Source: Rhodosorus marinus CCMP1338 | Taxonomy: Eukaryota; Plantae; Rhodophyta | Direction of reading: 5' to 3' | Assembly (NCBI GenBank): GCA_029953675.1 | Contig: JAMWBK010000008.1 | Location: 1,488,001 to 1,552,000, forward strand | DNA length: 64,000 nt | Part shown: positions 2,809-56,200 of the stretch, in pieces | Position numbering within the stretch: position 1 is the first letter of the stretch | Layout of the letters: the number at the start of each line of letters is the position of its first letter | Program-made: the position numbers and the translations under genes | Notes under the pieces: generated by a model | Told to the model about the DNA's origin: nothing | What the model saw: only the letters and a program-made list of their open reading frames with translations | Database searches by the model: none

Positions 2809-3118
2809 AACTTTTTCAACGGAAAAATTGACATTTTTCCGGTCGGCCGTGGATGACGTTGAGATACTTGTAAACCAGGATTTGGGAGAATGGGATGAAG
2901 GCGATTTAGTATTTTGGGGGGATTGGGGTGGAGAGGAGGAAGGGGGGTTGGGGAGGAAGGGAGGAGGAGGGAGTGAATTGTAGTGTTTGTTTGTTGTAGG
3001 TAATTGAAGTGTTTAGAATAAGGACTGAAGGATTGTTAAACCGAAGAGGTTTTAATTTATGAATTGAAGGAGTTTTGTTTTTTTTTGGGGTGGGGGAGGG
3101 GGCGGTTTGCGGGGACGG

Positions 3119-4857
3119 ATGGAGGGTTGTTTTGTTTTGAGTGGGGCGAAGATCCGGTCGTTGAAGGGTGGAAAGAGGTCGGTACATTCATCTAAGCGAT
3201 CTGGGTGTCGTGTTATGAGGATGGTTGTTGAGGAGAGAGCATCGATTGCTAGCGGGAATGTACCGCTTGAGGAGGCAGACCCTGAGGTTTACGAGCTTGT
3301 GCAGGAGGAGAAGCGTCGTCAGTGGAGAGGTTTGGAGCTGATCGCGTCGGAGAATTTTACGTCAAGAGCGGTCCTAGATACGCTCGGATCGGTGTTCACG
3401 AACAAGTACTCTGAGGGGTATCCGGGCGCACGCTATTACGGTGGAAACGAGGTGGTTGACAAGGTTGAACGGCTGTGTCAACAGAGGGCGCTTGAGGCGT
3501 TTGATTTGGACCCGAACGAGTGGGGAGTAAACGTTCAGCCCTACTCGGGATCGCCGGCGAATTTCGCAGCGTATACGGCGCTTCTCAACCCCCACGACAG
3601 AATCATGGGACTGGATCTTCCCTCAGGCGGCCATCTTACGCATGGATTTTATACTCCAAAGAAGCGAGTGTCTGCGACTTCCATCTACTTTGAGTCGCTG
3701 CCGTACAGAGTGGACAACGAAACGGGGCTAATTGATTATGACAGGCTCGAGGAACAGGCGAAGCTGTTCCTCCCCAAGCTGATCATTGCTGGCGGGAGCG
3801 CTTACCCGAGAGAGTGGGAGTACGCCAGGTATCGTGATATCTGCGACTCAATTGGCGCGTACCTGCTTGTGGACATGGCACATATATCCGGACTGGTGGC
3901 GGCAAAAGAATGCCGCTCTCCGTTCGAGTACGCGGATGTCGTGACGTCGACAACGCACAAGTCACTCCGGGGACCACGATCCGGTTTGATCTTCTTCAGG
4001 AAGAAACCAATCTGCCCAGCTGGTAGGCTTGACATGACAAAAGAAATGTTTCTTGTAGGGGACCTCTCTGATGCCCCTTCCTCCGCTGAAGTAGACCCCG
4101 TTTTGATTCGTAAATTTCGCTTTTGGTCACTCTAGGCGCAGAAATCGATATTGAGTCCGCGATCAACCAGGCTGTATTCCCGTCACTTCAGGGAGGCCCA
4201 CATAATCACCAGATAGCTGCGCTTACGGTTCAGCTCAAGGAAGTTGCGACTCCCGAATTTAAGACTTATATCCAGCAGGTGAAGAAGAACGCGGTTGCGC
4301 TCGCGGATCAGCTGCAAAAGAACGGCCTCAAGCTCGTCACTGACGGCACTGAAAACCACCTGGTCATGGTGGACCTGAGAACCAAGGGCTTCACCGGAGG
4401 CAAAGCTCAGAGCTTATGTGACGAAATCTCGATTACGCTCAACAAGAACGCTGTTCATGGGGACAAATCCGCAATGAATCCCGGTAAGTTAGGCTTCAAT
4501 GGCATACGAGCAGGCACGTGGCCATGCTCGGTTGCAGGGCTAAAGCTCCGAACCCCTGCTGGCCTAGTGTACACAATCTGATCGCGTTTTACCATGTCCG
4601 CAGGTGGCGTTCGAATCGGATCTCCCGCACTGACTTCGAGAGGTTTCAAGGAGGACGATTTCCGGCAGGTTGCCGATTTCATCTCCCGAGGTGTGGACAT
4701 CGGCCTGCGGATTCAAGAGGTCTCTGGGAAGAAACTCAAGGACTTTGAAAGTGCAATGGTGGGCAATGAGGAGCTCGCCGCTCTGCGGGAAGAGGTGGAA
4801 GCATTTGCGAGCGGCTTCGACATGCCGGGTTTTGACGTGGCAGAGATGAAAAAGTAG
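3119..4857 (+). CDS. SHMT: Serine hydroxymethyltransferase with N-terminal, probably plastid, transit peptide; 3 exons
   Basis: [35 protein letters not shown] (PLP lysine), [19 protein letters not shown]. Introns 4023-4135 and 4484-4603 restore the frame. Confidence 0.97.
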
Positions 4858-15022: not shown

Positions 15023-18000
15023 TCAGTTTGTTCGTACCTCAGACAGCGGTGCTGGATGAAACCTTTCAAGTTTTCTCGACGCAACCTTCAGACCCGAAAT
15101 GTAGTCTTCGATCTGGTGCGCGAGAGATTCACCTTCTACGGTGCTCTGAAGTCTAGCTTTGTTCAGGTCCCGGTTCGCTGATTTCTCCAGCGTAGATAGC
15201 AGCCGATATGCTCGACGCCTTCGCTCCCTTAGGTCCTGCACGATAGAGTCGTCCTGTCTCTGAAATGTTTTGAAAACATTATTGTTTTCATTGCTGGCAT
15301 CAAAGTCAACTATGTTCGGGTCTAGTGCTTCGTCGTGAGCCAAGTCCTTCTCTATGAAGTTGACAGAAAGCTTCTTGACTACCTTCTTCACCGCCTCCCC
15401 CTGCTTTTCTCGCTCGAGTCTAAGCCGCTTCACAGCTTGCGAATAGTCCTCAAGTTTGGATTTGTAGCTCTTAAGCTTCTTCTCTGCCTTTGTTCGACCC
15501 TCGCGCTCCGCTTTCAGCTCCAGACGAATCTTCCCATTCTCTTCGTTTGATTTACTCCACTTGCTCAGCACCTCTGACACCCGCTTCGTCACGCTTGACA
15601 TTTCCTGCTCCAGAAGCTCGTTCGCTCGCTTCTTCTCTTCGATCTGCTGCACTTGCTCACGATATCTCTCCTCAATGTCCTCCTGCTTCTTGTACAACCC
15701 AATCCTGTAGTCCTTCTCCTTAAGCGTCTTTTGCAGAAGCCTGACTTGATCAACCGCTCTCGCAGGCGATATGTCTTCCGCTTGACAAGCCCTCCAGTTC
15801 AAAGTTATCTGGCCGATATCGTATGAGTGAGAAACGTTGATCGCGGTTTCGGTCTTCTCTGCGAGGCTTCCGAACTTGTTGTACGCCATCACTGCAAGAA
15901 CGTATGATCGGAACTTCGATTTGAGGTCAACTACCTGCTCGTCTTTCCACTGCTTCCCGGGTGGTGCCTCTCCACGAAGAGAGTACACATGAAGGACTAA
16001 CAACTTCTGGAGCTTGAGATTCATGCAAGAGTTCTCAAGTACCTGGAACTCTCTGCGCAATCCCGGTAGAGAGGTCAACTGACTTTCCATGCGGCACATG
16101 TTTTGCGAGATTTCTTCCCTCGCTGCATCATCCCTGGCTTCGGACGAGTCGCAGCTATCGTGGCTCTGAGTCAATGTCTTCGCCCAGGATCTGTAGTGAT
16201 CCAAACATCGATTTACGTGCATGAATTCCTTCTGAGCATCTTCACGTTGCTTCTCGGCCTCTGCCAATTGGGCTTTCATCCGCATGTCATTTTCAGCAAG
16301 TAGTGTGCGGAGCTCCTTGTTGGAGTCGCATTCATGCTCAGCCAGTTCCCTCAATCGATCTGCGTGCGACTGAAGAATGGCGAACGCTTGTGCATCCGCC
16401 TGCCGCTCAGATAGGTCCTTCTGGAGGCAGTTTATTGCCGATTCCTGGACGTCGAGCGTGTTTATGGCTTCCTCGATGAGACTCCTTCTTTTTCCATCCG
16501 CGTGTATCTCCGTCCCTCGGAGCCGTTTGATGGTGGAAAGGAGCTGTGTCTGGTGCTCGAGAAGGTCTTCTACTGGTCCTAGCGCCAGCTCCATGCTCAC
16601 ATCTGCTCCACTGTGATCGCTGTAAACCAAGCTTGGAGAGCTAAACGAGAGCGAGATGTCGGCTTTCATGTCCTCCCGAATATCTTTTAGCTGCTTCTGA
16701 AGTGCTTCTTTCTCCTCTAAGACTGCCGTCAGCCTCGCTGTGTGCTGCTCTTCAACGATCTCCCTCTCCTTTGTGCTGTCGTTGATCTGCTGGCCAATCA
16801 TTGAATCCTTCAGGGTAAGCTCAGATCGGAGAGATTCCACAAGAATGTTCAACCGATCCTTGTCCTTGATAAGAGCCTCTATCCTACAAGTTAGTTGCTC
16901 CTGTAGAACATACGAAATACGCGAAAAGAACGTCTCAGTCCCAGAAAAATTCAGAGGTTTTGGAAGGAACGTGAAAGGATGGAAGCCATGAAACGTACAA
17001 TCAAGTCTGGACTTCCTTCTAATCTCAAAATTTCGGATGGTGTCTGAACACGCTTCTCATCTTGGATCTCAGTCATGCTGAGGTCCACCGCGGTCCTCAG
17101 TTGCTCATTCATAGTCATAATGTCCCTATCCTTCTCTGCTGCGACAATTCTCCATTTCTTGGACTCCTCTTCTGCCACGGAACGCTTTTGCACAGCATCC
17201 TTCAGCTCATTGGTCTTGGAAGCAATCTCCTCGTGCAGGGATTCCAGTTCCAGCCCCCTTTCGTGAAGGTCTTTTCTGAGTTTTTCAAGACCCTGGACCT
17301 TCGAACTTGCCTCCTTGAGGTCTGCCTCAAGTTCACTCACTCTGCTCCGCAGAAGTATGGTTTGCCTCGACTGATCAATCGAGTCCTTGTGCAACGTTTC
17401 CTCCGACTGTTCCCGTCGCTCTGCGGACTCTTTGAGCGCATTAATGATACTTCTCTGTTCTGTGAGTTCAAGGTCTTTCTCGTCACATACCTTCCGAACA
17501 TTGTCGATCTCTTCCCTCAGCTCCCTGAGTATTGACGTCGTCTGTTCATGCTCGTCAGATATCATCCTGTCTTTATCGGCCATCCGCTTCAAATCAAGCT
17601 GAGCTCTAGCCACCTGCTCCTCCGCTACCACCAGATTTCTGAACGATTCCTCGGTATCCTTTCTCTGCTCAACGATTGCCTCTCGCATAGCTTCGAGCTC
17701 GCTTTCCACAACTTCCCGCTTCTTAGATTCCTCAAGAACTCGCTGTTCCAACGATCGCACTGTAGCCTTGTGCACTTTTTCAGTGGTTTCACAAACCTCA
17801 CACCTCCGCGGTAGCGATCGTTTCATTTGATGAGTTAAGCGCGTATTCTCACCGCGAAGTTCGGCGCCTTCCTCCTCCAAGGCGCGGATTCTCGATTCGT
17901 ACGCCATCAGGCGCTGTGCAAACTCATTCGAATGAATGGCTTCTTCCTCAGGACTGAATTCTTCATCAAAATCTGACTCAGATCCTTCAGATACGGTCTT

Positions 18001-18546
18001 CTCGAACAACGCTGGCTGGGAAGGTTCAAACTGGACGTCCACATTGCCAATCCACTGGTTGTCGTTCTCGTTCAGCTCGTACTTCGGCATTACCCGCTCC
18101 ACGTCCTTGAAAGGGATTGAAGATGCCTCAGATGCGGTTCCTGGAGGATTCCTCGAGAGGCTCTTCACGTTGGATGATATGCTCGCTGAAGGAACCCCCT
18201 CAAAGTAGACAGACGCGAGTCCACCGCTCGCGTTTTCATTGGCGGGACTAGCACGACTCCCTGGATTGGTGTGCCGAGTTTCTAGAGCGTCCAACGGACT
18301 CTTATTTTCCATTCTCTCCTTGAGCTTGGATTCCGCGGGAACTATTGGAAGACTCACGTCCTCACATTGATCGTCGTTTATTCGCATCCTTTCAAGACCG
18401 CTTGAGATTGTACCGCTGCTGTCCTCCACGTGACCAAGCTCTGAGATCAGCTCACTTTGATCATGGGTGTTTATCAAGCCGGTGCCTTCCGAAAATTCAT
18501 CCAAAAAATCCATTGTCACCCCAGGCCGATCCTCGGACAAGTTCAT
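15023..18546 (-). CDS. Large (~1100-1150 aa) coiled-coil protein of unknown function, 2 exons
   Basis: ORFs 16951-18606 and 15023-16852 are joined by a GTACGT..CTACAG intron (~16900-16997), giving ...PDLI/EQLTCRIEALIKDK.... E/K/L/R-rich heptads. Start at 18546 or 18513. Confidence 0.75.
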
Positions 18547-19515
18547 TCCAACAAGAAACCCGGAAAGACGTACACTATCCCCAATCTGCACACTACACCC
18601 AACCAATGCACTTCAAAAATGCACGCCGAAAGAGAGTTCCTTACAATCCAGTTCGTCCTTTTCTCTGCGCCCCTCTTCGACCCACCAAGCCAGTGAACCC
18701 AACTCACCTTCCCACCTAGTGAGGAGCCCCTCCGTCGAAAACAGAGTAGCGAAAAAAATGCTACTGTCAAACCTTCCAACAGGGCATTGACATATGCAAC
18801 TAAACTACACTACTAGTCCCAATTCCTATACAAAATCCGTCCGAAACGAACAAAGGAACCTATCACCTTCCCTCCCTAACCCTAACGTCCCATCCAACCC
18901 GCTCAGAAACCACACTCCCCTCCTGCCGTTACCAAAAAAAAAAAAAAAGATAACCAGAAATATATCCAAACGTTTCAAAATTTGAAATAAGGACGCGTGT
19001 CCTATAATTTTTCTACCAATTATTATCTGACGCGTGTAACAGTTTACCACCAAATTATTTAATGCCACGTGCCCTATCCAGGTCACGAAAGCTGATCTAG
19101 ATCGATGATCGAGGGTTGAGCGCACATCTTAGCGGGGCTGGGCTCTGTGGAGCTCTTGCTTTTAAAGCGTTCAAGTTGCTCGGTGAATTATGTATGCTTT
19201 GTAACTCTAAATGAGGCTTTTTTTTTGAGCCATGCCTGTCCTGAAGGAAACGCATCGTAGCTTCCTCATCTTCCTGAGTTCAGCCGTTTCTTAGGTGAGC
19301 CCCTGCTTTCTTCATGTTGGGGTTTTTCAAAGGAGTTAGCGGAGGCATCGGGGTGTAGAAGACCACCTCTCTGGTGGTGGGTATTTTTTCTTCCTCTTGT
19401 TTATTTTTTTTGTTTTGAGAGGGGTTGTGTGCAAAGGATCGGAGCAATGTACTGGCCGCAAGCTTGGTGGGTTCTTAGAAGACTCCTAGGTGTCGATGAA
19501 ATTTTTTTTTTTTTC

Positions 19516-31831: not shown

Positions 31832-31904
31832 AGCTGCGTGGCCTAATGGATAAGGCGATGGACTTCTAATCCATAGATTGCGGGTTCGAGTCCCGTCGTG
31901 GCTG
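31832..31904 (+). tRNA. trnR-UCU: tRNA-Arg(UCU), intronless
   Basis: Cloverleaf: acceptor AGCTGCG/CGTGGCT+G, D arm GCCT/AGGC, anticodon stem ATGGA-CTTCTAA-TCCAT, T arm GCGGG-TTCGAGT-CCCGT. Followed by a TTTTT Pol III terminator. Confidence 0.95.
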
Positions 31905-36072: not shown

Positions 36073-36650
36073 GATTCTGATGCCCCCAATGCCCCTCTGG
36101 TATGCCATGTCGTCGATTCCAATCGGTTTGTGCAGATTCCGATGCCCCCTAGGGTATTTGCCATATCCGCGATTCCAATCGGTTTGTGACGATTCCGATG
36201 CCCCCTAGGGTATTTGCCATATCGGCGATTCCAATCGGTTTGTGAAGATTCCGATCCCCCTAGCGTATATATGTCATATTGTCGATACCAATATGTTTGT
36301 AGAGATTCTGATGCCCCCTAGCGTATATGCCATATTGTCGATTCCAACACGTTTGTAAAGATTCTGATGCCCCCAATGCCCCCTAGCGTATATGCCATAT
36401 CACCGATTCCAATATGTTTGTAGAGATTCTGATGCCTCCATGCCCCCAAGGTAAGCGATTCCAATCGGTTTGTAGAGATTCTTGTGCCCCCATTGCCTCC
36501 AGGGTAGCCATATCGGCGATTCCAATCGCCTTGGTGAGATTCTGATGTCCCATTTGCCCCCCGGGTAGGCCACATCCGTGATTCCAGTCGGTTTCTGGAT
36601 ATCTTGATGCCCCAAGTGTGCCTACATATGCCCCAAAATCGTTTGCTGGC
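36073..36650. repeat. ~56-bp minisatellite, about 10 diverged units
   Basis: GATTC(C/T)GATG unit starts at 36073, 36135, 36191, 36247, 36304, 36360, 36425, 36477, 36538 and ~36598. Most units contain the GATTCCAATC dyad or a close variant. Confidence 0.92.
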
Positions 36651-37177
36651 GTTGAACAAAAACTCGGCAGAGGTGGAGACTTCTCAAACTAGTGGCTTCG
36701 TCCGTAGGGTTGGGGAGGGTCAGGCAGCGATGGACTTGGCTAGCGAAATGACTTGAGCAGCGGCATATGGAAGTTGAAGAAAAAGGAATTTAGGACGCTC
36801 CGTCCTTAACAAAGGTGTCAACGTCTGTGTGGAGAAGTGGATGCTATATAGTGGCGGTTGAGCTAATGCAAGACCGCTCGTAAGGCGCCGAACTGTATAA
36901 TGACCTTCAGTTCAATAATTCATGTCTTTTTTATCGGGGCAATGAATTTTTCTTCATTGGACGAATGAGCCTTTATGTCTCGTTTTCGGTGTTTCCCAAA
37001 CCGCATAACTTTGGGAGCATTGTTTTTCATGAACGTACAAAACATATTTCAGAATGTGCAAGCCTCGATGCGATAGTGGCCCGAAATCAGCAAGACCCAT
37101 CGAAATTTTATTTATTTGTATCGCCGGTGGGCGTCTAATCCTGAAGGGGGCATGCCTCATGCCGGTTCGCGACCCAA

Positions 37178-37433
37178 TGTCACGTCCTGAAGAAACAAAC
37201 CATGGCACGACCGGAGGGCTAACATAGCACGACTGGAGGGCTAAACATAGCATGGACGGAGGTCTAAACTTGGCACAGCCGGAGAAAGATAGCCTATAAA
37301 TACGAAGTTACGACGTCCCAGTGTACACGGGGCTAGAGTGAGAGAGGAGGTATCCAAGATAAGAAAAACATATAAAAGCTGAGTTGAAAAAGGATTTTGG
37401 ATCAAAGACATATTATTAACGGGGAACGTGTCA
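37178..37433 (+). mobile_element. Full 5' LTR (256 bp) of Ty3/Gypsy element A
   Basis: TGTCACGTCC...GGAACGTGTCA imperfect inverted termini, ~22-bp U3 tandem repeats (37201-37283), TATAAATA at 37295, followed by putative PBS TGGTCTCATCG. Confidence 0.85.
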
Positions 37434-39334
37434 TTTTGGTCTCATCGCTTAGTTGCGATTGCCGGGGGGAAGAACCTGGAAAAAATTGAGCCCTATAAAG
37501 AACCAGAGGAATTACCTATAAAGAACAGAAGGAGAATCTTAACCAGCGAAAGAAAAAGGACAATAATGGCGCTCTAATCAAAATCCAGGCCCCACAGCCG
37601 AAGACCTATGATGGGAACGGGATGCGCCGCTAATTAGTACATTCCTGAACAGTCTCAGGACGTACTTTAAATTAGCACGGCTTCCTGATGACGACGACGA
37701 ATACAAAATTACCCCGGCCGAAGGGTATTTGACAGGAGATGCCTCATACTGGTGGTCTCTGATTCCTGAAGAATTTGAGACAACGTTGAAAACCCAGTTC
37801 TATCCGGCCGATGCGAAAATCCGAGCTAAGCAACAGCTCGCGAGAGCGGTCCAACGGACATCTGTAGCGGCGTACTCCGCGTATTTCAACAAGTGCCTTA
37901 TCCAAGTTGGCACGATCTCCGACTCGGAAAAATTCGATAGATTCGTAGACTCACTGAAACCGGACGTCAAGAAGTATATTTACATACAAGACATCCAGAC
38001 CTTCGACGAGGCGCAGGCCCTAGCGCTCAAGGTGGAGGGAGCCGAACGGGCCAGCCAAGCGTACAGGGGGGAGGAAAAATCATCTACGAAGGCTGCTACG
38101 CCACCGTCTGTCGTGAAGGTTGGTACCCGCTCGGGGCGTACGTACCAACCCACCACCCAGGCGCTCACAAAGCGAAGCTACGCCCACGTCGCCTGCAACT
38201 ACTGTGGAAAACGGGGGCATACGAAGCGTATTTGTTGGAGTAATCCGGAAAGGGGCCAAACGGTGGCGAAGACGGCACCTCCCCTTACTCAACAGTTAAA
38301 AGGGGAGCAGCAGTAGACGACGCCGTTACTGTTGCTGAAAAAGGCGTCCCCTTCCTCTCCACGGGGATATGACAGATGATGATATGACAATCAAAGGGTT
38401 GGTCAACGGCAAGGAAACCCTCCTGCTAATCGATACAGGTAGCAGTCACTCTGTCATAAGGGGATTGCGAGAATCGAGGCCGTTGTTACCGTCTTGACAT
38501 AAACAATTGGATACGGCAGCACCGGGCGCATCCGTTAAAATCTTGAGCGAGGCCAACGTGACTTTACAACTCGGCGGTCACTACTTCGATTGGCAGCCCT
38601 ATATTGTGGAGGACGCTGTGAGCCCGGGATACTTAGGAAGAGACTTCCTAAACCACTACCAAGCGAAGTTTGATCTACCGAAGCAGATCCTGACCCTGAA
38701 ACCAAGCGAAAAACCTGAACCAACAATACAACTTGAAAACGAACTCGAAGAAGAACCTGATAAACCCGGAGAATACCCTGCAGTGATTGCCATGAACCCG
38801 AAAGGAAATAACCCCGACGAAATAAGGAAGAAAGAAGCGGAGGAGCTGGAAAAATGGGTAACATCCAAATACAAGTCGGTTTTTTTCGACGATATATTAA
38901 AGCATTACCACCTTGGCGAAAGATGAACTTCGCTATAGACTTGAAACCAGGAGCGGAGCCAACATCGCAACGACCTTACCGAATGAGTCTTGCAGATCAG
39001 AAAGAGCTTAAAACTTCAACTCCATGATCTTTTGGACAGCAACCTGATTCGACCCAGTTCAGCGCCTGCGCCTCTCTTGCTGGCGTCTGTACACACAAGG
39101 AACGTTTTTCTAAAATCTGGATTTCGCAAAACTGGTATCTCTGTCAATTCCTTCCGTAGTCTATCGAAAGCTTGTTGCTGGTTGGATCCCCACTGAAACT
39201 GAAACGTTTTTCTTCGTCAGTTCCGTTAACTGTGCCGCGGTACATAGGTCCGTAGGTACCGCGTGAAGCCTAGGAATGCACGTATGTCGTGTACGTTCTC
39301 TGGGATCCTCCTTTTATTAACGCGGAACGTGTCA
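37178..39334 (+). mobile_element. Ty3/Gypsy element A: LTR, frameshifted gag, protease and RT start, then an inverted RT/RNase H fragment and a 3' LTR tip
   Basis: gag with YLTGDASYWW and CNYCGKRGHTKRIC; protease LIDTGS; RT start LLDSNLIRPSS; 39061-39310 antisense RAFLGF...QQQAFD...TDASKRGAG; tip TTATTAACGCGGAACGTGTCA; flanks CCCAA / CCCAC. Confidence 0.85.
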
Positions 39335-39379
39335 CCCACCTGACTCACATTGACAGCCTGTCAAGCTCGGGAATGCGTG

Positions 39380-40740
39380 TGTTACGTCCTGACCGAACTA
39401 GTCAGCCGAATGGCTTGTCATGCCATTCAGTCTGACAAATGCACCGGCTGTGTTCACCAGACTTTTGAACCACATCTTTTTCAACGAGCTCAATGACTTT
39501 TTCATGATTTTCTTGAAAACGATACTGTCACCGAACCTGGAAGCACACCGAAGGCATCTGGGTATGGTGTTCAACAAACTACGCAAACATAAATTGTTTG
39601 CCAAGCTATCAAAGTGTACTTTTGGAGTTCCCGAGACGAAGTATTTGGGTCACCTAGTTGGAGGCGGAAAACGGCGACCGGACCCCGGCAAAGTAGTTGC
39701 TCTCAAAAACTGGCGACCTACGAAGAATGTTCAAGACGTCAGATCCTTTCTGGGTTTTACGGGCTACCTACGAAATTATGTGTCGCGATTCAGCCTAATT
39801 GCGGCACCGCTGACAGAGTTGACAAAGAAGGGAGTTAAGTTTCAGTGGGGAGCACAGCAGCAACAAGCTTTTGATAGTTTGCGGACAAAACTATCAAACG
39901 AACCAGTTTTGCATAACCCGGACTTCGGAAAAGGGTTCATCGTTTGTACGGACGCCAGCAACAAGGGCGCAGGTGCCGTACTTCTTCAAACCTTTGACGA
40001 CGGGGAACACCCGATCGCGTACTACTCGAAAAGGTTTACAGAAGCAGAGGAAAGGTACTCAACCTATGAACAAGAGTTGTTCGCTTTAGCGGCTGCAGTC
40101 CTTCACTGGCGCACATATCTGGAGGGGTCGAGTTTTCGGTTCGCACGGATCACGACCCATTGAGATTCTTACATTCGCAAAAGGAGCTTACGAAGAGACA
40201 AGCCCGATATTTATATCGGCTAATGCCCCTTCAGTTCAACATCAAATATAAACAGGGCAAGGAGAATATTGCGGATGCGCTGAGTCGCCACGCCATACAA
40301 CAATTAACAGCCGTACAGTTGTACCCAATCCAGAGTTGGGGCAAGCGTACCTGCAGGATCCGGAGTTCAGCGAAATCTTTGAGCATCCGGAGCGGTACCG
40401 GCAGCAAGGATTCATTCGCAAACTATCAAAAGCTTGTTGCTGCTGTGCTCCCCACTGAAACTTAACTCCCTTCTTTGTCAACTCTGTCAGCGGTGCCGCA
40501 ATTAGGCTGAATCGCGACACATAATTTCGTAGGTAGCCCGTAAAACCCAGAAAGGATCTGACGTCTTGAACATTCTTCGTAGGTCGCCAGTTTTTGAGAG
40601 CAACTACTTTGCCGGGGTCCGGTCGCCGTTTTCCGCCTCCAACTAGGTGACCCAAATACTTCGTCTCGGGAACTCCAAAAGTACACTTTGATAGCTTGGC
40701 AAACAATTTATGTTTGCGTAGTTTGTTGGAGAACGTGTCA
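39380..40740 (+). mobile_element. Ty3/Gypsy element B: LTR tip, RT C-half and RNase H, 312-bp inverted duplicate, LTR tip
   Basis: Starts TGTTACGTCCTGA and ends GAACGTGTCA. EWLVMPFSLTNAPAVF, DVRSFLGFTGY, TDASNKGAGAVL, YSTYEQELFAL. Flanks GCGTG / GCCTG. Confidence 0.85.
39572..40728. repeat. 312-bp inverted repeat (39572-39883 vs 40417-40728) with a 533-bp loop
   Basis: Both arms read as reverse complements by eye. The ORF track gives identical peptides on opposite strands (39614-39838 + and 40462-40686 -). Confidence 0.95.
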
Positions 40741-40767
40741 GCCTGCCATGCAATTCGCAAGTGAGAA

Positions 40768-50525: not shown

Positions 50526-53294
50526 CTTTCCAGAGCCGCTATATTCCTCAAAGGGAAATTCAGCCTCACAAAACCCAAACACAGACAGCCAATCTCTAAA
50601 AACAAAGCGAGAGACGCGGCCTCCCCGTCTAATCTCTCACCTGGCAAAAAAAAATCCAGGGAACGACATCTAATACCCCTCCTCCAAGAAAAAGCGTGAT
50701 CAGAAAAAACTAAAGACTCAAAACACTCCCTTCAACCATCCAAAAGCACTAAGTCTTAAACTTATCCTTTCAACATCTCTCTCTCTCTCTCGCACTCTCT
50801 CTCCACACCCTCCCAACCACTTTCGTTTCTCTAATTAAATACCCCCCCACCAGGGTATCATTCGCCACTTAAAAAAATATCGACGTCAGCAATCGCGTTC
50901 CTTTTCATGACAGCAGACACACCTCTCTTTCCCCATCTCTCAGCAAAATAAAAAAAAGAAAAAAAAACGGGGCGGGTGTGACAAAAAAAATTGCCCTCTT
51001 AGTATTTTCTAGTACAACTACTAAATTCGAAAAAAGGCAATAAAATATTTTCCTTTTATTCCTCTACTACCAATAAATCCTTTCTATGGTGGGAAACGGG
51101 CTCGGGGGGGGGCGCTGAGGGGGCAGGAACCATGCCCCCTCCCCACTCCACCCGAAAATTTGTACGCGAACCGAAGATGAGGATTAAAAATAGAGGGATC
51201 TTCCTCGATTTTGGGGCAATTTGGCCTGGGCGGCATGCCCATTAGAAAACTTATTTTGAATATTCATGATATATATAGTCCGAAATTATGTTCGTTATTA
51301 CAACTAACAATAAAATATACCAATATTTATTCGTATTATGAAGAAAAATGGATGTCCTCATTCCTCCAACTCGCCCCCGCGCTGAAAAATGAATTATTAA
51401 ACTGAAATTCATTGACAAGGATAGACCTGATCCAGAGGGCGTTGAAGACGTGCTGAAGGCGACAACTTTACTGGTAGTTTTCTGGAGGTCGGTAACCGTA
51501 ACCTCTCTGGGCAGCTACCTACTGCAGCGCAACACTGATTCTATTACGATCTATGGGGAAAGTTCAGGTTTAACCCGGCTTGCGGGGGTCCACCTACGTT
51601 CAAAAAAAAAAATAACAGGGACCAGTTGAGCTAGGGATTGTCCAACTGGTGCACATGCAGAGCTGCTATCGCAAGCTCCTCGTTCCCTTTACCAATAGTG
51701 TCCTGTGCACCTGAGCTCGCACGTCGCTCTGCTCGTTCGTCTTGGGTCATTCGTCCGGTACGTCCAAAAGCCGCGCTCACCATTGGAATGGACTTCTCGT
51801 GCTGAATTTTCAATAGACATCCTTCCCTTCCTTTGTATGCGCCTGTTAAGAATTTTCTGCGAGTCTCGCTGTGTAGCGGTTCTCGGCCCGGCTCCGGTTC
51901 AGATGCTTCCCCTCAAGGACGAGATTACTGAACACATTCAGGGCAAACCTTTGCAAGGTCTTCCGATGGATGGAAACTGCATCCGGTCGCAGCTGTAGTT
52001 CTCGAACTAGTCTAATCTGGTTTTTGCTTAATGTCTATGGAAGTTCCACCGGTTTAGCCACCGAGCGAGAATGGTGTGGGGGGGGGGGGAAGGGCATGAG
52101 AATATGGACGATCGGATTGGAATCGCCGTTATGGCTAATAGGCCAGGATGGGGCTTGGTGGCCTCAAAGTAGTTGTCGAAATCAGCACCATTCTCCAAGA
52201 GGGGTATTCCGGGTCGAAGCTGCATTACGTGAAGGCTTTAGGGATCAGATCAGATCATAGTGGTCCATGCTCGACCTAGACGCCGCTTAGTAGCGTTTTT
52301 GGATAAATGAAGGTTGTGAAGCGCGTTAACCCTGGGGGGCAGTAGTGCGGGCTCCTTAAAAAGAGGACAGGGGCTCCGAAGAAGCAGTTTTGAAGTACTT
52401 TCATGGAGGTCGAAACGGCGGGTGCCAAGGCGCCAGCTCCACTTTGGACACGTCCCAGAGCTTTCCCCCCAGCAGTTGCTTTGAGTACGAAGGTTCCCCC
52501 CTCTTCGTCCGATTGGAGCGCAATCCACAAGCCCCAGACTTTTGCATGGAGATTGTGTAGTTGCTCACGCGTGAAGGATTCTCAATGACAGTCACGACGA
52601 CTACAGGAGAGCTTTGTGGGGCTCGAGGTCAACTGTCGATCGTTTTCGAGTTGTAAGGAGTCGCATTTCGCTTATCGGAATCGCCTCGGGACACACACAG
52701 ACCTCATCGGAAACCAAGATCGAGAAGCCGTACGCAAGACTGATTGGCTGTGAAATAATCGTTCTCCTCGAGATCAATCTTTACATAACAAATAAGAAAG
52801 CACGCAACACACAAGTAAAGCGTAATCGCAACCCTTCGCCAATCGACCGAGTTGAAGATGCTTTGTACATACAAGCAAGTGAGTAAATTGATCATCAAAC
52901 AACACACCAACAACGCAAATCTCCGTCATCGCCGGTCGCTAATTACAAAAGACAAACCAACATTAGAATGTTATATAGTTAACACGACAGTTAGTACACA
53001 ATTGAAAGCCTCGCTCTCGCCACTCGACTCTCGAAAGTTGTCGTCCTTGCCCTCGAAAGTGGAAAGTACAGGCGCCAAAGTCTCTACCCAGAAAAGTCTG
53101 TCCCGTGCTGGACGATTCCTCTGCCGCCTCCACATCAGTCCACTGTGCGCTTTCGACCCACAGGCCTAGAGTCGTAGAAAGACGCCAGGTTGACTAAGCA
53201 TCACACGCCGGTAGTGGACAGACATGGTCTTGCGAACACGGCCAACAGCACCGTTTCGATGGAGGTTCCCTCAAGACAGCTTTCCAGCTGTTGC

Positions 53295-56200
53295 CTACTC
53301 CTGATGCATCCCGAGAACCTCATCAAATGAAAAACCGAAGACCTTGCTCTCATCCAGCCCGTGCCCTCGCGGGTCTCCGAAGAAGAGCGACATGTCAATG
53401 CCTTGAGAACCTGCGTCAGGTCTCGCACCAGCCTTGTCGTCGTTGATCACTGCTCCAGAATTACTCGTCGGTTCCTGGGTCAACGTCTCTGCCAGAAGCG
53501 ATTCCGAAAACTCGTCTACACGCTCAAATTCTCTAGACATCTGCATGAAGTCGGTGTTCGGTGCTCCCGTCATGCTCGGTACCGAGCTGCTTCCTTTACC
53601 TGAGGAAGACGCCTCCTTGGGCACCTCCTGCTTTTCCGAGCCAGGTTCAAGTGCGAGCTTAGCTAGAGTCACCCCCTCCTCTTGTTCGAAACTCTCTAGA
53701 GTCTGATGCTTCTCAGCCTTCTCCGTGAGAATCGGCAGGACCCGGTTCATGGTGTTGCAGATCACCTTCACCTTCTCGCTCTTGCTGGGGCCGTTCCCGC
53801 GAATCCAGTTCGACACTACCGACTGTGAAACTCCGGTTAGGTTATGGATTGTTCTCTGCGAAATCCACGGAATCTTCTCCGTCAACTGCTTTGTCCGGAT
53901 TCGTGTCTCCACCATTGCATCGGGCTCCGCCGATGAAGCATTGCTGGTTTCTTTCTTCCCCTTCGATCCGGCCGCTGCGCCGGACTGCTCTCTCTGGCTA
54001 GGAGCCTTCTTCAAAGAACTTGCGGTATCCGTTGCGGCGTCCATTGCCGCCCCTGAATCAATGGTATTATCTGTGCTGTTGACGGTCGCCTTCTCCGCTC
54101 CAATAGTGTACTGGGCCCCTAGTTGCGAGAACACGTCAAAGTTTGCTACTTGCTCTTTCCCTCTGCCTTTCGGTTTCGGTTGGCTGTTTTTTCTCTTCAT
54201 TATTCCCAGAATATCGCTGGAAGAATCGCGGTTCTGCGGGGGAGCTGATTCCGGCGTATTCATGCGATTCTGCGCTCCGGCGGGTTCCACCTACGCGTCG
54301 GGGAGGGATCATTCAAGGGGGACAAGTTCAGGATCACAGGTTCTGAAGTTTTGTGCACGCGCTTAGTACAGTACTCACCATTGCAGCAGGGTCACCTACC
54401 GAAGCCCTCTGTTCCGGCACTGGCCCAACCCCGCTGAGAAGCTGCTGAAGGATTCCATCTGCATCGCTGCTTTCCTGCTTTGATATCGAAGCCTTTCTTT
54501 GCAGTGGCCCTGACCCAAAGCCTTTAGCGGCGCCTCCCTTCACCGTTCCCCCAGAGGGCCGTTGCTTCAGCGGACCACCACGCCCCTTCGGAGCGGGCTT
54601 GTCCTGAGACCTCCTCCTACCCTTCGACTCCGAGGTAGGTTTCCCTACTTTCTCGACTGGCTTGGGTTCGTTTTTGCTGGCGAGCTGATCTATATTTGCG
54701 TCTCGCTGAGGCGCTTCCTGTGCAGACTTAATCGTCTGCATCTGCAAGTTCATTGCGTTCATCAGCGACTCGGCATTCGTGCTAGGCTGATCCTTCTGCG
54801 CGCCGCGTGCTCTTCCACGGCTGGACTTATGGAATAAGTCAGCCGGCTGCATGCTCTCGCCCTCGGGAGACCCGCGTTTCTGAGTTTCTGCTCCATCACC
54901 CGATACCATGCCATCAAGCAGGAATCTTAACTGGTCTCCCTGAGCAACGGAAGTAGGCTTTTCCTCCTGTAGCTTGTTTCCAATGCTTGAAGCCACCTGC
55001 TGTGCGCTAGCCGCAGGATTCTGAAACTTCGGACGCTTGGTAGCTGCTGAACCTCCCTGCTGTTTCTGACGGGAATTCCCTTGCGGTTGGGCGTTTTGCT
55101 GCTGCTTCCCTTGTGGCAGCTGCGCAAATCCTTGCCACTGATGTCCGGCTTGTCCTACTGCTCCGACTTGTCCGAGTTGTACAGGTTGTCCAGCTGGTCC
55201 GGGCTGCACCGGCTGTCCAGGAAGTTGTCCCGTCTGTTGCGGCTGTTGTCCTTGCTGTTCCTTTTGCAGCTGTTGTCCCATTTGCTCATGGCGGTGTCGC
55301 TCGAGCTGTCGCTGAATTTCGCCGGAGTATGGTTGTGGATTTTGCGATCGGGGTGTCCTCGGTTGAAGCTGTGAGCCTCCCTTTCCAGCACTCAACATGG
55401 CAGTCGGGTCCGTATGAACCTGCTTTGTTGGCGCGCTTGCTCGCCTGAATTTCAGTGGATCCTGACTCCCATCCGCGGCAGATGCTTGCTGCTGTTTCTG
55501 CCGGCGTCCTCCCCTCTTTTCCGCAACTGGCGTCTCAGGTTTTGCTTTTCCCGTCATCATAGCCGCGAGCTGATCCTGTTCCCATTGCAAAAGTCCACTC
55601 CAAGTTAGTTCAAGTTCCTGCGAAAAGTACAAAGAAGCAAGGCGTACCTCTCGACTCTGTTTCGCCGTTGCTTGCCCCTTGGAAGATTGCTCCGATCCTA
55701 TTGCTTCGGGCTTGTCAAAAATGCTACCAAGGATTGCCATCTCTGATATAGAATTGAACGTCTTCGACTTTCTCAGATCGTCCAGTTGCGATTCTGCTTA
55801 CGCACGGGGCCGAAAAATTTAGACTCTGCAAGCAAGGGCATTGCCGCGTTTTCGCGCTATCATCTACCTTCAGTCTTCTTGCCTCGGCCCGACCCCTCGG
55901 CTGTTTTCCTCTGGCCACCTTTCTGTTGCTTTACTTGCAAACTTCCGTCGCTCTTCATCCGCCGCAGTGTACTGCCGCCCCTCTGACCTTTCTGCTAACG
56001 AATATTGACAAATCGGAATCAGGTTAGAAACCGCACGTTTCTCCAGAATCCTATGTGAGACGCCCAACCTGCTTGACGCCCAAACCATCAATGATGTCCT
56101 GCGCTTTCGCAGATTGCAGTCCCTTCTCCACTGGAGGAGACGCCATCAGCGTTTCTTTCCCTTCCCGGCCGGTAGAGAAGTCCTCCCAATGCGTATTCTT

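Follow-up and report, generated by a model that had tools for sequence, protein, structure and literature searches.

Two neighbouring tip-capped Ty3/Gypsy derivatives with antisense reverse transcriptase segments in Rhodosorus marinus, possibly mis-assembled before integration

A 64,000-nucleotide stretch of the red alga Rhodosorus marinus CCMP1338 (contig JAMWBK010000008.1, positions 1,488,001 to 1,552,000), referred to here as the window, carries side by side two rearranged remnants of retrotransposons with long terminal repeats (LTRs), called here elements A and B. Both follow the same order: a sense part, an antisense segment derived from the thumb of the reverse transcriptase (RT) and the RNase H region, and finally a tip of 10-21 bp corresponding to the end of U5. 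The locus was mapped by sequence reading, repeat analysis, self-BLAST, six-frame translation, Pfam searches and tblastn with Rhodosorus relatives, for which the comparison set consisted of the Rhodosorus transcripts L001-L006 and the proteins P0001, P0002, P0125 and P0247. Self-BLAST and repeat analysis identified no other retroelement locus of this kind in the window. Coordinates are collected in Table 1.

Table 1. Features of elements A and B and of their immediate flanks (window coordinates)
Feature	Position	Strand	Remarks
Left putative 5-bp target-site duplication of A (CCCAA)	37173-37177	.	4/5 vs 39335-39339
A 5' LTR, 256 bp, TGTCACG...CGTGTCA	37178-37433	+	only full LTR; unique in window
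TATA-like CCTATAAATAC	37293-37303	+	within A LTR, downstream of the 22-bp repeats
Primer binding site TGGTCTCATCGC	37437-37448	+	3 nt past LTR; short hairpin (ATCGC...GCGAT) next
A gag: capsid and CCHC zinc knuckle	37566-38316	+	frameshifts/stops within first ~100 nt
A protease and RT N-terminus (fingers, to ...LIRPSSAP)	38369-39067	+	one in-frame stop, at least 2 frameshifts
Junction A1, 8-nt overlap (CAGCGCCT)	39060-39067	.	sense fingers end = antisense RNase H start
A antisense segment, RT thumb (..NKRRIPENVHDIRAFLGF..) to RNase H start (..FLVCTDASKRGAGA)	39060-39318	-	Pfam RT_RNaseH_2, E = 5.7e-11
A 3' tip TTATTAACGCGGAACGTGTCA, last 21 bp of U5	39314-39334	+	20/21 vs 37413-37433
Unique spacer, 45 bp, presumed host DNA	39335-39379	.	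first 5 nt CCCAC, last 5 nt GCGTG
B 5' tip TGTTACGTCCTGA, first 13 bp of U3	39380-39392	+	12/13 to LTR start
B sense body: RT palm (..EWLVMPF), thumb, RNase H, linker to integrase	39393-40416	+	Pfam RVT_1, RT_RNaseH_2, RT_RNaseH
Inverted-repeat arm 1, sense thumb region of B	39572-39883	+	312 nt, 100% complementary to arm 2
Inverted-repeat arm 2, antisense thumb of B	40417-40728	-	exact inverted copy of 39572-39883 (312/312)
B 3' tip GAGAACGTGTCA	40729-40740	+	last 10 nt exact to LTR end
Right putative target-site duplication of B (GCCTG)	40741-40745	.	vs GCGTG at 39375-39379

Element A opens with an LTR running TGTCACGTCC...GGAACGTGTCA, which is bounded by TG...CA and has short imperfect terminal inverted repeats. 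Self-BLAST found no second copy anywhere in the 64-kb window, so the single full LTR noted when the locus was first read stands, and the two LTRs, identical at insertion, of a complete Ty3/Gypsy element are not present. Three 22-bp tandem repeats (CATRGCACGACYGGAGGGCTAA) at 37201-37267 give its U3 a promoter- or enhancer-like look. The final ~75 nt of the LTR align with the 5' ends of transcripts L005 and L006, both of which enter the primer binding site (PBS). The PBS of L005 is identical to that of the window and the PBS of L006 differs at one base, and each stands directly 3' of a homologous U5 end (...ACGTATCA in L005, ...CTTATCA in L006). A short hairpin follows the PBS in the window (PBS and hairpin at 37437-37460), in L005 (100-123) and in L006 (81-103); its structure is conserved, its sequence is not (ATCGC...GCGAT as opposed to TCCCA...TGGGA in L006). 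The tRNA-Arg(TCT) gene of the window (31832-31904) was considered as primer or target and rejected, as its 3' end mismatches the PBS and it lies 5.3 kb away. Downstream, the decayed gag gives Pfam Retrotrans_gag and Ty3_capsid matches slightly under the cut-off and shares 66% identity with P0247, a Ty3-capsid protein from Rhodosorus, and the protease and RT N-terminus match Pfam Asp_protease_2 and align with the stretch MSLSDQQELK...IRPSSSP of P0125.

The sense body of A ends in the RT fingers and is followed by an antisense segment that aligns by tblastn with the thumb and RNase H start of P0001, P0002 and P0125 and that carries stops of its own and a ~16-nt deletion. At the first junction (A1) the sense strand reads ...TCA GCG CCT (S A P), and the antisense sequence is the reverse complement of GGC GCA GGC GCT G, which encodes the GAGA of DASxxGAGA. 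The nucleotide identity of the segment is 74.5% to L002, the closest available relative, and 73-74% to B. It spans a part of RT/RNase H that overlaps the antisense block of B and, at 73-74% identity, comes from a different lineage, in line with the earlier suggestion that two subfamilies are represented. No sense counterpart of this block was detected by self-BLAST in the locus or the window. The tip that closes the element is 21 bp long and starts at 39314, slightly shorter than the ~23 bp from 39312 first proposed; a match of this quality is not expected by chance (0 in 100 shuffles). Thumb segment and tip overlap by at most 5 nt (TTATT), and the alignment with L002 carries thumb homology into the first bases of the tip. 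Neither the 45-bp spacer that follows nor the flanks of the locus have any similarity to the elements, to the transcripts or to the remaining window. The spacer contains a palindrome, TTGACAG-C-CTGTCAA (39350-39364), whose arms resemble the LTR end motif TGTCA; this could mean a target-site preference or could be chance.

Element B has LTR tips at both ends. Its sense body is 66-69% identical in amino acid sequence to the Rhodosorus proteins P0001 and P0125, and it is decayed: the catalytic YxDD is gone (..IFLKTIL..) and frameshifts occur near 40130 and 40320. The antisense RT-thumb/RNase H piece that the sequence-only reading had placed inside each 3' tip was recovered in both elements, by Pfam and tblastn in A and by tblastn, as thumb, in B. 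That of B, taken at the time for a piece of linker, is however an exact inverted copy of the element's own thumb region, a relationship that had been overlooked. The two arms lie 533 nt apart according to repeat analysis and blastn, which makes B a hairpin with a 533-nt loop, and folding predicts an uninterrupted 312-bp stem for the RNA or the single-stranded DNA. No other inverted repeat of such size in the window is 100% identical. Together with the preceding G (40728), the B 3' tip reads GGAGAACGTGTCA (40728-40740) and matches the LTR end at 12 of 13 positions. The 13-bp 5' tip was also considered as RT coding sequence and this was rejected, because nucleotide homology to the RT of a relative begins only at ~39406, some 14 nt further in.

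Taken together, A and B show the domain order gag, protease, RT, RNase H, integrase (the last as linker only) that fits Ty3/Gypsy; the window contains no integrase core. As there is only one LTR in 64 kb and the other ends are mere tips, A and B are on sequence grounds best described as derivatives of Ty3/Gypsy (Metaviridae) and not as complete members. Protein searches with the RT/RNase H of B returned 65-69% matches solely from Rhodosorus transcriptomes, the next matches being below 50%. An exact-product look-up of the 247-aa open reading frame (ORF) of B gave no record, and a metagenome scan with aligned Rhodosorus RT/RNase H proteins gave 68 loci, all at most 50% identical and none from Rhodosorus.

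The family termini were taken as TGTYACGTCCTGA...GAACGTGTCA. Considered window-wide, both short tips of B are insignificant, with 1.1 and 1.5 matches expected, and they are likewise insignificant when the LTR is freely aligned with 100-bp pieces. The chance of a 13-mer with at most one mismatch is ~6e-7 per position, and the case for the short tips lies in their placement: each corresponds to an LTR terminus over its full length, has the orientation required and sits precisely on the border of retroelement homology. Transcripts L005 and L006, which were matches of a gag search, begin in R/U5 and continue into the PBS. The U5 end, the intervening bases and the PBS read ..GGAACGTGTCA, TTT and TGGTCTCATCGC in the window, ..GAGACTTATCA, AC and TGGTCTCATCGC in L005, and ..GGACGTATCA, AG and TGGTCCCATCGC in L006. 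This conservation argues that the 3' motif is the true U5 terminus of the element group, as had been supposed when the motifs were read as real family ends. The U3 (5') terminus is taken from the full LTR and the B tip. The tip motifs were not found in transcripts L001-L004. We also considered whether the 3' tips could be reverse-complemented 5' tips of antisense copies; this was rejected, the match being 9/13 in that orientation vs 12/13 as 3' ends.

The bases next to the tips bear on the number of insertions, Ty3/Gypsy integration being accompanied by target-site duplications of 4-6 bp. With their placement fixed by the tips, the flanking 5-mers agree at four of five positions both for A (CCCAA and CCCAC) and for B (GCGTG and GCCTG). 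Given the base composition of the window, the probability of at least 4/5 is 0.0157 per pair, as had been estimated (~1.6% each), and 2.5e-4 for both jointly. The outermost pair, CCCAA and GCCTG, agrees at only two of five. Because the outer flanks match at 2/5 and the inner pairs at 4/5 twice, the flanks point to two separate integrase-type insertions; a single composite element spanning 37178-40740 was rejected on the same comparison.

Microhomologies at the junctions, whose mapping had been proposed with the sequence-only reading, are 8 nt at A1, at most 5 nt between the thumb segment and tip of A, 0 (up to 6) nt at the inner junction of B and 1-2 nt at its outer one. At the inner junction (40416/40417) no base is shared beyond the repeat, positions 39884 and 40416 being mismatched, but CGCAAA at 40417-40422 also fits the sense frame (..GFIRK), from which the possible 6 nt arise. 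The outer junction lies at 40728/40729. Over the whole range of 0-8 nt, template switching by RT and end joining fit equally well.

One transcript may show a related arrangement. L006 (Joint Genome Institute (JGI) 3300016967, Ga0186194_104995, 1-1372), from a sister Rhodosorus, starts with sense R/U5-PBS and ~130 codons of gag (to ~nt 545) and then runs through integrase, RNase H and the RT N-terminus in antisense; sense gag and antisense pol are joined without an intervening LTR. In the antisense part an HHCC integrase region follows RNase H in domain order and most of the RT is deleted (..QIQDLTNKK joined to FIVCTDAS..), with both deletion endpoints within ~30 nt of the inverted junction of A. 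L006 may represent a third scrambled copy, a contig chimera or read-through across nested fragments. No tip is claimed in it: the tip-like TGTCTACGACTCCTGAA is gag coding sequence instead, and an R-like A-rich 3' end is explained by antisense coding for the RT N-terminus. Transcripts L002, L003 and L004 (JGI 3300017118) consist of a sense RT-thumb/RNase H fragment followed by an antisense monothiol-glutaredoxin-like ORF and differ by internal indels; read-through or chimerism at a retroelement fragment beside a host gene may account for them. They had been candidates for inverted pol and were set aside, their antisense part being host glutaredoxin.

On balance, and by a modest degree of belief, we favor the reading that A and B arose as separate integrase-mediated insertions of defective Ty3/Gypsy cDNAs that had been mis-assembled during reverse transcription. 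The earlier suggestion that the cDNA was scrambled before integration is partly supported by the tips, by the putative duplications and by retroviral precedent, and strained by the perfect arms of B beside its imperfect duplication. Each of the three truncated LTR ends still has 10-21 bp of the terminus, and none reaches into flanking DNA. If scrambling precedes integration this is readily accounted for, because the retained bases would be the first ones synthesized, whereas by our reasoning a random deletion in a ~5-kb element after insertion would leave such a tip with a probability far below 1% in each case.

The main competing reading is rearrangement after insertion, in which two ordinary full-length Gypsy copies inserted 45 bp apart were later cut by break repair or replication template switching, through fold-back, microhomology-mediated break-induced replication or polymerase-theta-type repair. 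In A this would have produced an inversion between two deletions; B would have lost its 5' part and gained an inverted duplication accompanied by a deletion. The 0-8 nt of microhomology at the junctions suit end joining just as well. Chromosomal repair, however, does not protect LTR termini, and yet three of three truncated ends retain 10-21 bp. The antisense block of A, moreover, has no sense template in the locus or window, so this reading needs a true inversion with two flanking deletions, and a like architecture must have arisen twice by chance in two neighboring elements of different lineages. Weakened in this way, repair after insertion seems to us unlikely; were it nevertheless correct, the locus would document ordinary transposon decay together with one neat example of fold-back repair.

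Under the favored pre-integration reading, the tips would follow from where synthesis starts. Minus-strand DNA begins at the PBS and would copy the end of U5 first; plus-strand DNA begins at the polypurine tract (PPT) and would copy the start of U3 first. Only tips would remain if a nascent strand quit its template after 10-21 nt and was joined, with little or no homology, to another intermediate. The antisense blocks could arise by a 'U-turn', in which the growing plus strand quits the minus-strand template at 39067 (A) or 40416 (B) and a strand of plus polarity is then copied backwards for 255-312 nt. In B the template copied backwards would be the element's own or a sister nascent strand, giving a snap-back hairpin, and in A a co-packaged genome from a different lineage. 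At its end the antisense block would then pair with an abortive tRNA-primed minus-strand start, and mutual copying would give a duplex with integrase-competent ends. The complete 5' LTR of A could derive from normal plus-strand strong-stop DNA of the particle's second RNA, as for proviruses with asymmetric LTRs. The 3' tip of A differs at one base from the element's own 5' LTR, and this difference would fit, together with the lineage of the antisense block, two different co-packaged RNAs. The plus-strand U-turn is the previously proposed route, in which the minus strand leaves U5, seen from the bottom strand, and the two are sequence-equivalent descriptions. Integrase would act as a filter, and tips would always be present because only molecules with both termini are inserted. 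Ty1 integrase is known to insert fragments that share only the terminal TG...CA, still with 5-bp duplications (PMC2939329).

Several points weigh against mis-assembly before integration. Non-homologous switches are required two or three times per molecule, and two molecules of this rare kind must have landed 45 bp from each other. Both putative duplications match at only four of five positions and neither is perfect. L006, as a de novo transcriptome contig that may be a chimera or nested-fragment read-through, serves as a lead only. Most pointedly, the arms of B are identical over 312/312 positions, yet the duplication of B is imperfect and its coding sequence decayed. Had each lineage diverged by 0.5%, arms free of any difference would have a probability of 0.044, and had it diverged by 1%, of 0.002, so divergence since the duplication should be less than ~0.5% per lineage. 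Perfect arms in a decayed element with an imperfect duplication fit a recent chromosomal event, and at the right end of B sequence found 533 bp upstream recurs as an exact inverted copy beside a deletion, which is the classic mark of fold-back repair. Three explanations could resolve the conflict in B: it may be a young insertion from an already dead source copy, its arms, 533 nt apart, may have been homogenized by gene conversion, or its inverted copy may have been made after insertion by chromosomal fold-back repair, which is also central to the reading of rearrangement after insertion.

The last two possibilities lead to a mixed history, in which tip-capped deleted cDNAs integrated and the 312-bp duplicate of B was later made, or kept identical by conversion. 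This would reconcile the signatures of a pre-integration origin (tips and duplications) with the identity of the arms in a decayed element. Palindrome arms are known to be homogenized by gene conversion, and arms at this distance would be good conversion partners. A later event that hit precisely the border of the sense body and the 12-bp tip would, however, add a further coincidence. Since A has the order of sense part, antisense part and tip but contains no duplicate, a single mechanism for the two elements is the simpler assumption, and we judge a mixed history to be rather improbable.

A perfect inverted repeat and odd junctions could in principle also result from chimeric reads or a repeat misjoin, and the identical inverted repeat of B is unique in size within the window. 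An assembly or sequencing artifact, however, would not place unique DNA and matching 5-mers right after specific LTR termini; the antisense block of A is diverged and has no second copy to be chimeric with, and the remaining window is ordinary gene-dense sequence. We consider an artifact very improbable.

Geometry disposes of three further origins: autointegration, nested insertion and twin priming. Autointegration ('suicide') is known to generate inverted segments linked to LTR ends, both in Ty1 and in Arabidopsis particles (PMC7197481). Its products are circles in which internal DNA has become attached to the outer face of a complete LTR terminus, whereas at this locus the antisense DNA borders a 10-21-bp tip from within, and outside the tip there is unique DNA with a putative duplication. 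Nested insertion of oppositely oriented copies would set reverse-complemented LTR ends beside the antisense block, but the tips are sense-oriented (12/13 and 20/21 to the 3' end, vs 9/13 to the reverse-complemented 5' end). We give these two possibilities, taken together, hardly any credence. Twin priming of the L1 type was rejected too, as there is no poly(A) and the inverted part lies at the 3' side, beside the U5 tip.

Several known systems invite comparison. Defective retroviral proviruses (Joseph et al. 2022, J Virol, PMC9278108) resemble the elements in combining an intact 5' LTR with a 3' LTR that is deleted from upstream and keeps its U5 end, and in showing large internal deletions, occasional inverted segments and normal integration. 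Of the proviruses sequenced in that study, 29.5% carried a 3' LTR shortened from the inside beside an intact 5' LTR, one such provirus lacking all of U3 and R, and inversions were present in 2 of 78 unique proviruses. These structures were ascribed to misalignment of RT, which quits its template where two RNA copies are present, the intact 5' LTR being restored by strong-stop DNA from the other co-packaged RNA (PMC9278108). By analogy, element A looks like an extreme version of the asymmetric-LTR provirus. The differences are that the 3' LTR is here cut to 10-21 bp and the 5' LTR of B to 13 bp, well beyond most of the cases in that study (PMC9278108), that an antisense block lies directly against the tip in both copies, and that the proviruses are somatic whereas A and B are ancient germline Ty3/Gypsy insertions in a red alga. 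The complex template-switched insertions of LTR retrotransposons described by Sabot and Schulman (2007, PMC1950507) are large fusions with whole LTRs in sense orientation, unlike tip-only elements with inverted segments.

Among LTR elements, autointegration circles (Ty1; Arabidopsis SISYPHUS, PMC7197481) share an LTR intermediate with an inverted portion of the element, made in the particle, but are circular dead ends with complete LTRs, in contrast to linear tip-capped chromosomal copies. Non-autonomous terminal-repeat retrotransposons in miniature (TRIM) and large retrotransposon derivatives (LARD) likewise have non-coding or defective interiors and depend on proteins in trans; they possess two complete LTRs, PBS and PPT and replicate as families, whereas A has one LTR and B none. 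L1 twin priming is target-primed and poly(A)-dependent, and its junction joins the starts of two segments. Resulting L1 5' inversions are similar in being duplication-flanked insertions with one part inverted and a small deletion or duplication at the inversion point; here, in contrast, the sense segment is linked by its end to the distal end of the inverted one, inversion affects the 3' side and the ends are LTR tips. Inverted L1 structures are listed in PMC2912911. Deletions of the Ds type leave the termini recognized by a DDE enzyme while the interior is lost, and rearranged or inverted nearby sequence may serve as filler. Ds-del and Ds with filler DNA are cut-and-paste transposons whose interior is deleted through abortive gap repair. 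There too synthesis begins at the termini and is interrupted, although what is repaired is a chromosomal gap left after excision. Since LTR elements do not excise, their equivalent of synthesis starting at the ends would be reverse transcription itself. The Ac/Ds family is the subject of PMC3260210.

The surroundings of the locus are those of an otherwise ordinary, gene-dense eukaryotic nuclear region encoding SHMT, NMD3, a cyclin, Nic96, a SNARE and a WD40 protein. The NMD3 exon shares 97% identity with NMD3 of Rhodosorus marinus, the two differing by real substitutions, from which the strain of the window appears to be near to, yet distinct from, the Rhodosorus strains with public transcriptomes. 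The elements sit in unique intergenic DNA ~550 bp downstream of a 56-bp minisatellite; Rfam revealed no small-RNA gene at the insertion site and the reconstructed empty site contains no conserved ORF. The minisatellite (36086-36630) comprises ~9-10 units of 52-65 bp each with the consensus ...CGATTCCAATCGGTTTGTGAAGATTCCGATGCCCCCTAG..., and a single inverted unit related to it, 75% identical, lies at 52092-52147. Elsewhere, two 165-bp direct repeats (2453-2617 and 2644-2808; 97% identical, starts 191 bp apart) stand just upstream of the SHMT exon (3107-4135). Three minus-strand ORFs at 15023-16852, 16951-18606 and 54334-55740 (609, 551 and 468 aa) have no Pfam match, and the first two fall within a strongly AT- and GC-skewed stretch.

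A and B belong to a known kind, that of defective template-switched retroelement insertions; what is unusual here is the reduction to tips at both ends, the abutting antisense segments and the host lineage. With one LTR in A and none in B, neither can be copied by normal reverse transcription. Nor can they collapse into solo LTRs, which may help such copies persist. A retains a complete LTR with a TATA-like box and has no downstream R/polyadenylation region, while B has no promoter, so transcription from A would be expected to run through the spacer into the 312-bp hairpin of B, which would give the earlier self-silencing idea a concrete form. It is plausible from this arrangement that the promoter of A and the hairpin of B form a natural source of double-stranded RNA against the family. 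Two copies and one suggestive transcript give a hint of recurrence. A broader proposal, to which we attach little weight, is a recurrent failure of Rhodosorus Ty3/Gypsy elements in which both strands abort 10-21 nt in and the plus strand makes a U-turn, giving tip-capped hairpins and a self-made silencing trigger; if it were true, read-through from A into B would produce long double-stranded RNA against the RT thumb. If the more limited view of mis-assembly before integration is correct, the locus would be a fossil record of the earliest steps of reverse transcription failing in the little-studied red algae. It would indicate how small a number of terminal bases this integrase tolerated in vivo (10-13 bp), would reveal strand-switch inversions in LTR retrotransposons as in retroviral proviruses, and would point to a way in which copies arise that are barred both from renewed replication and from reduction to solo LTRs.

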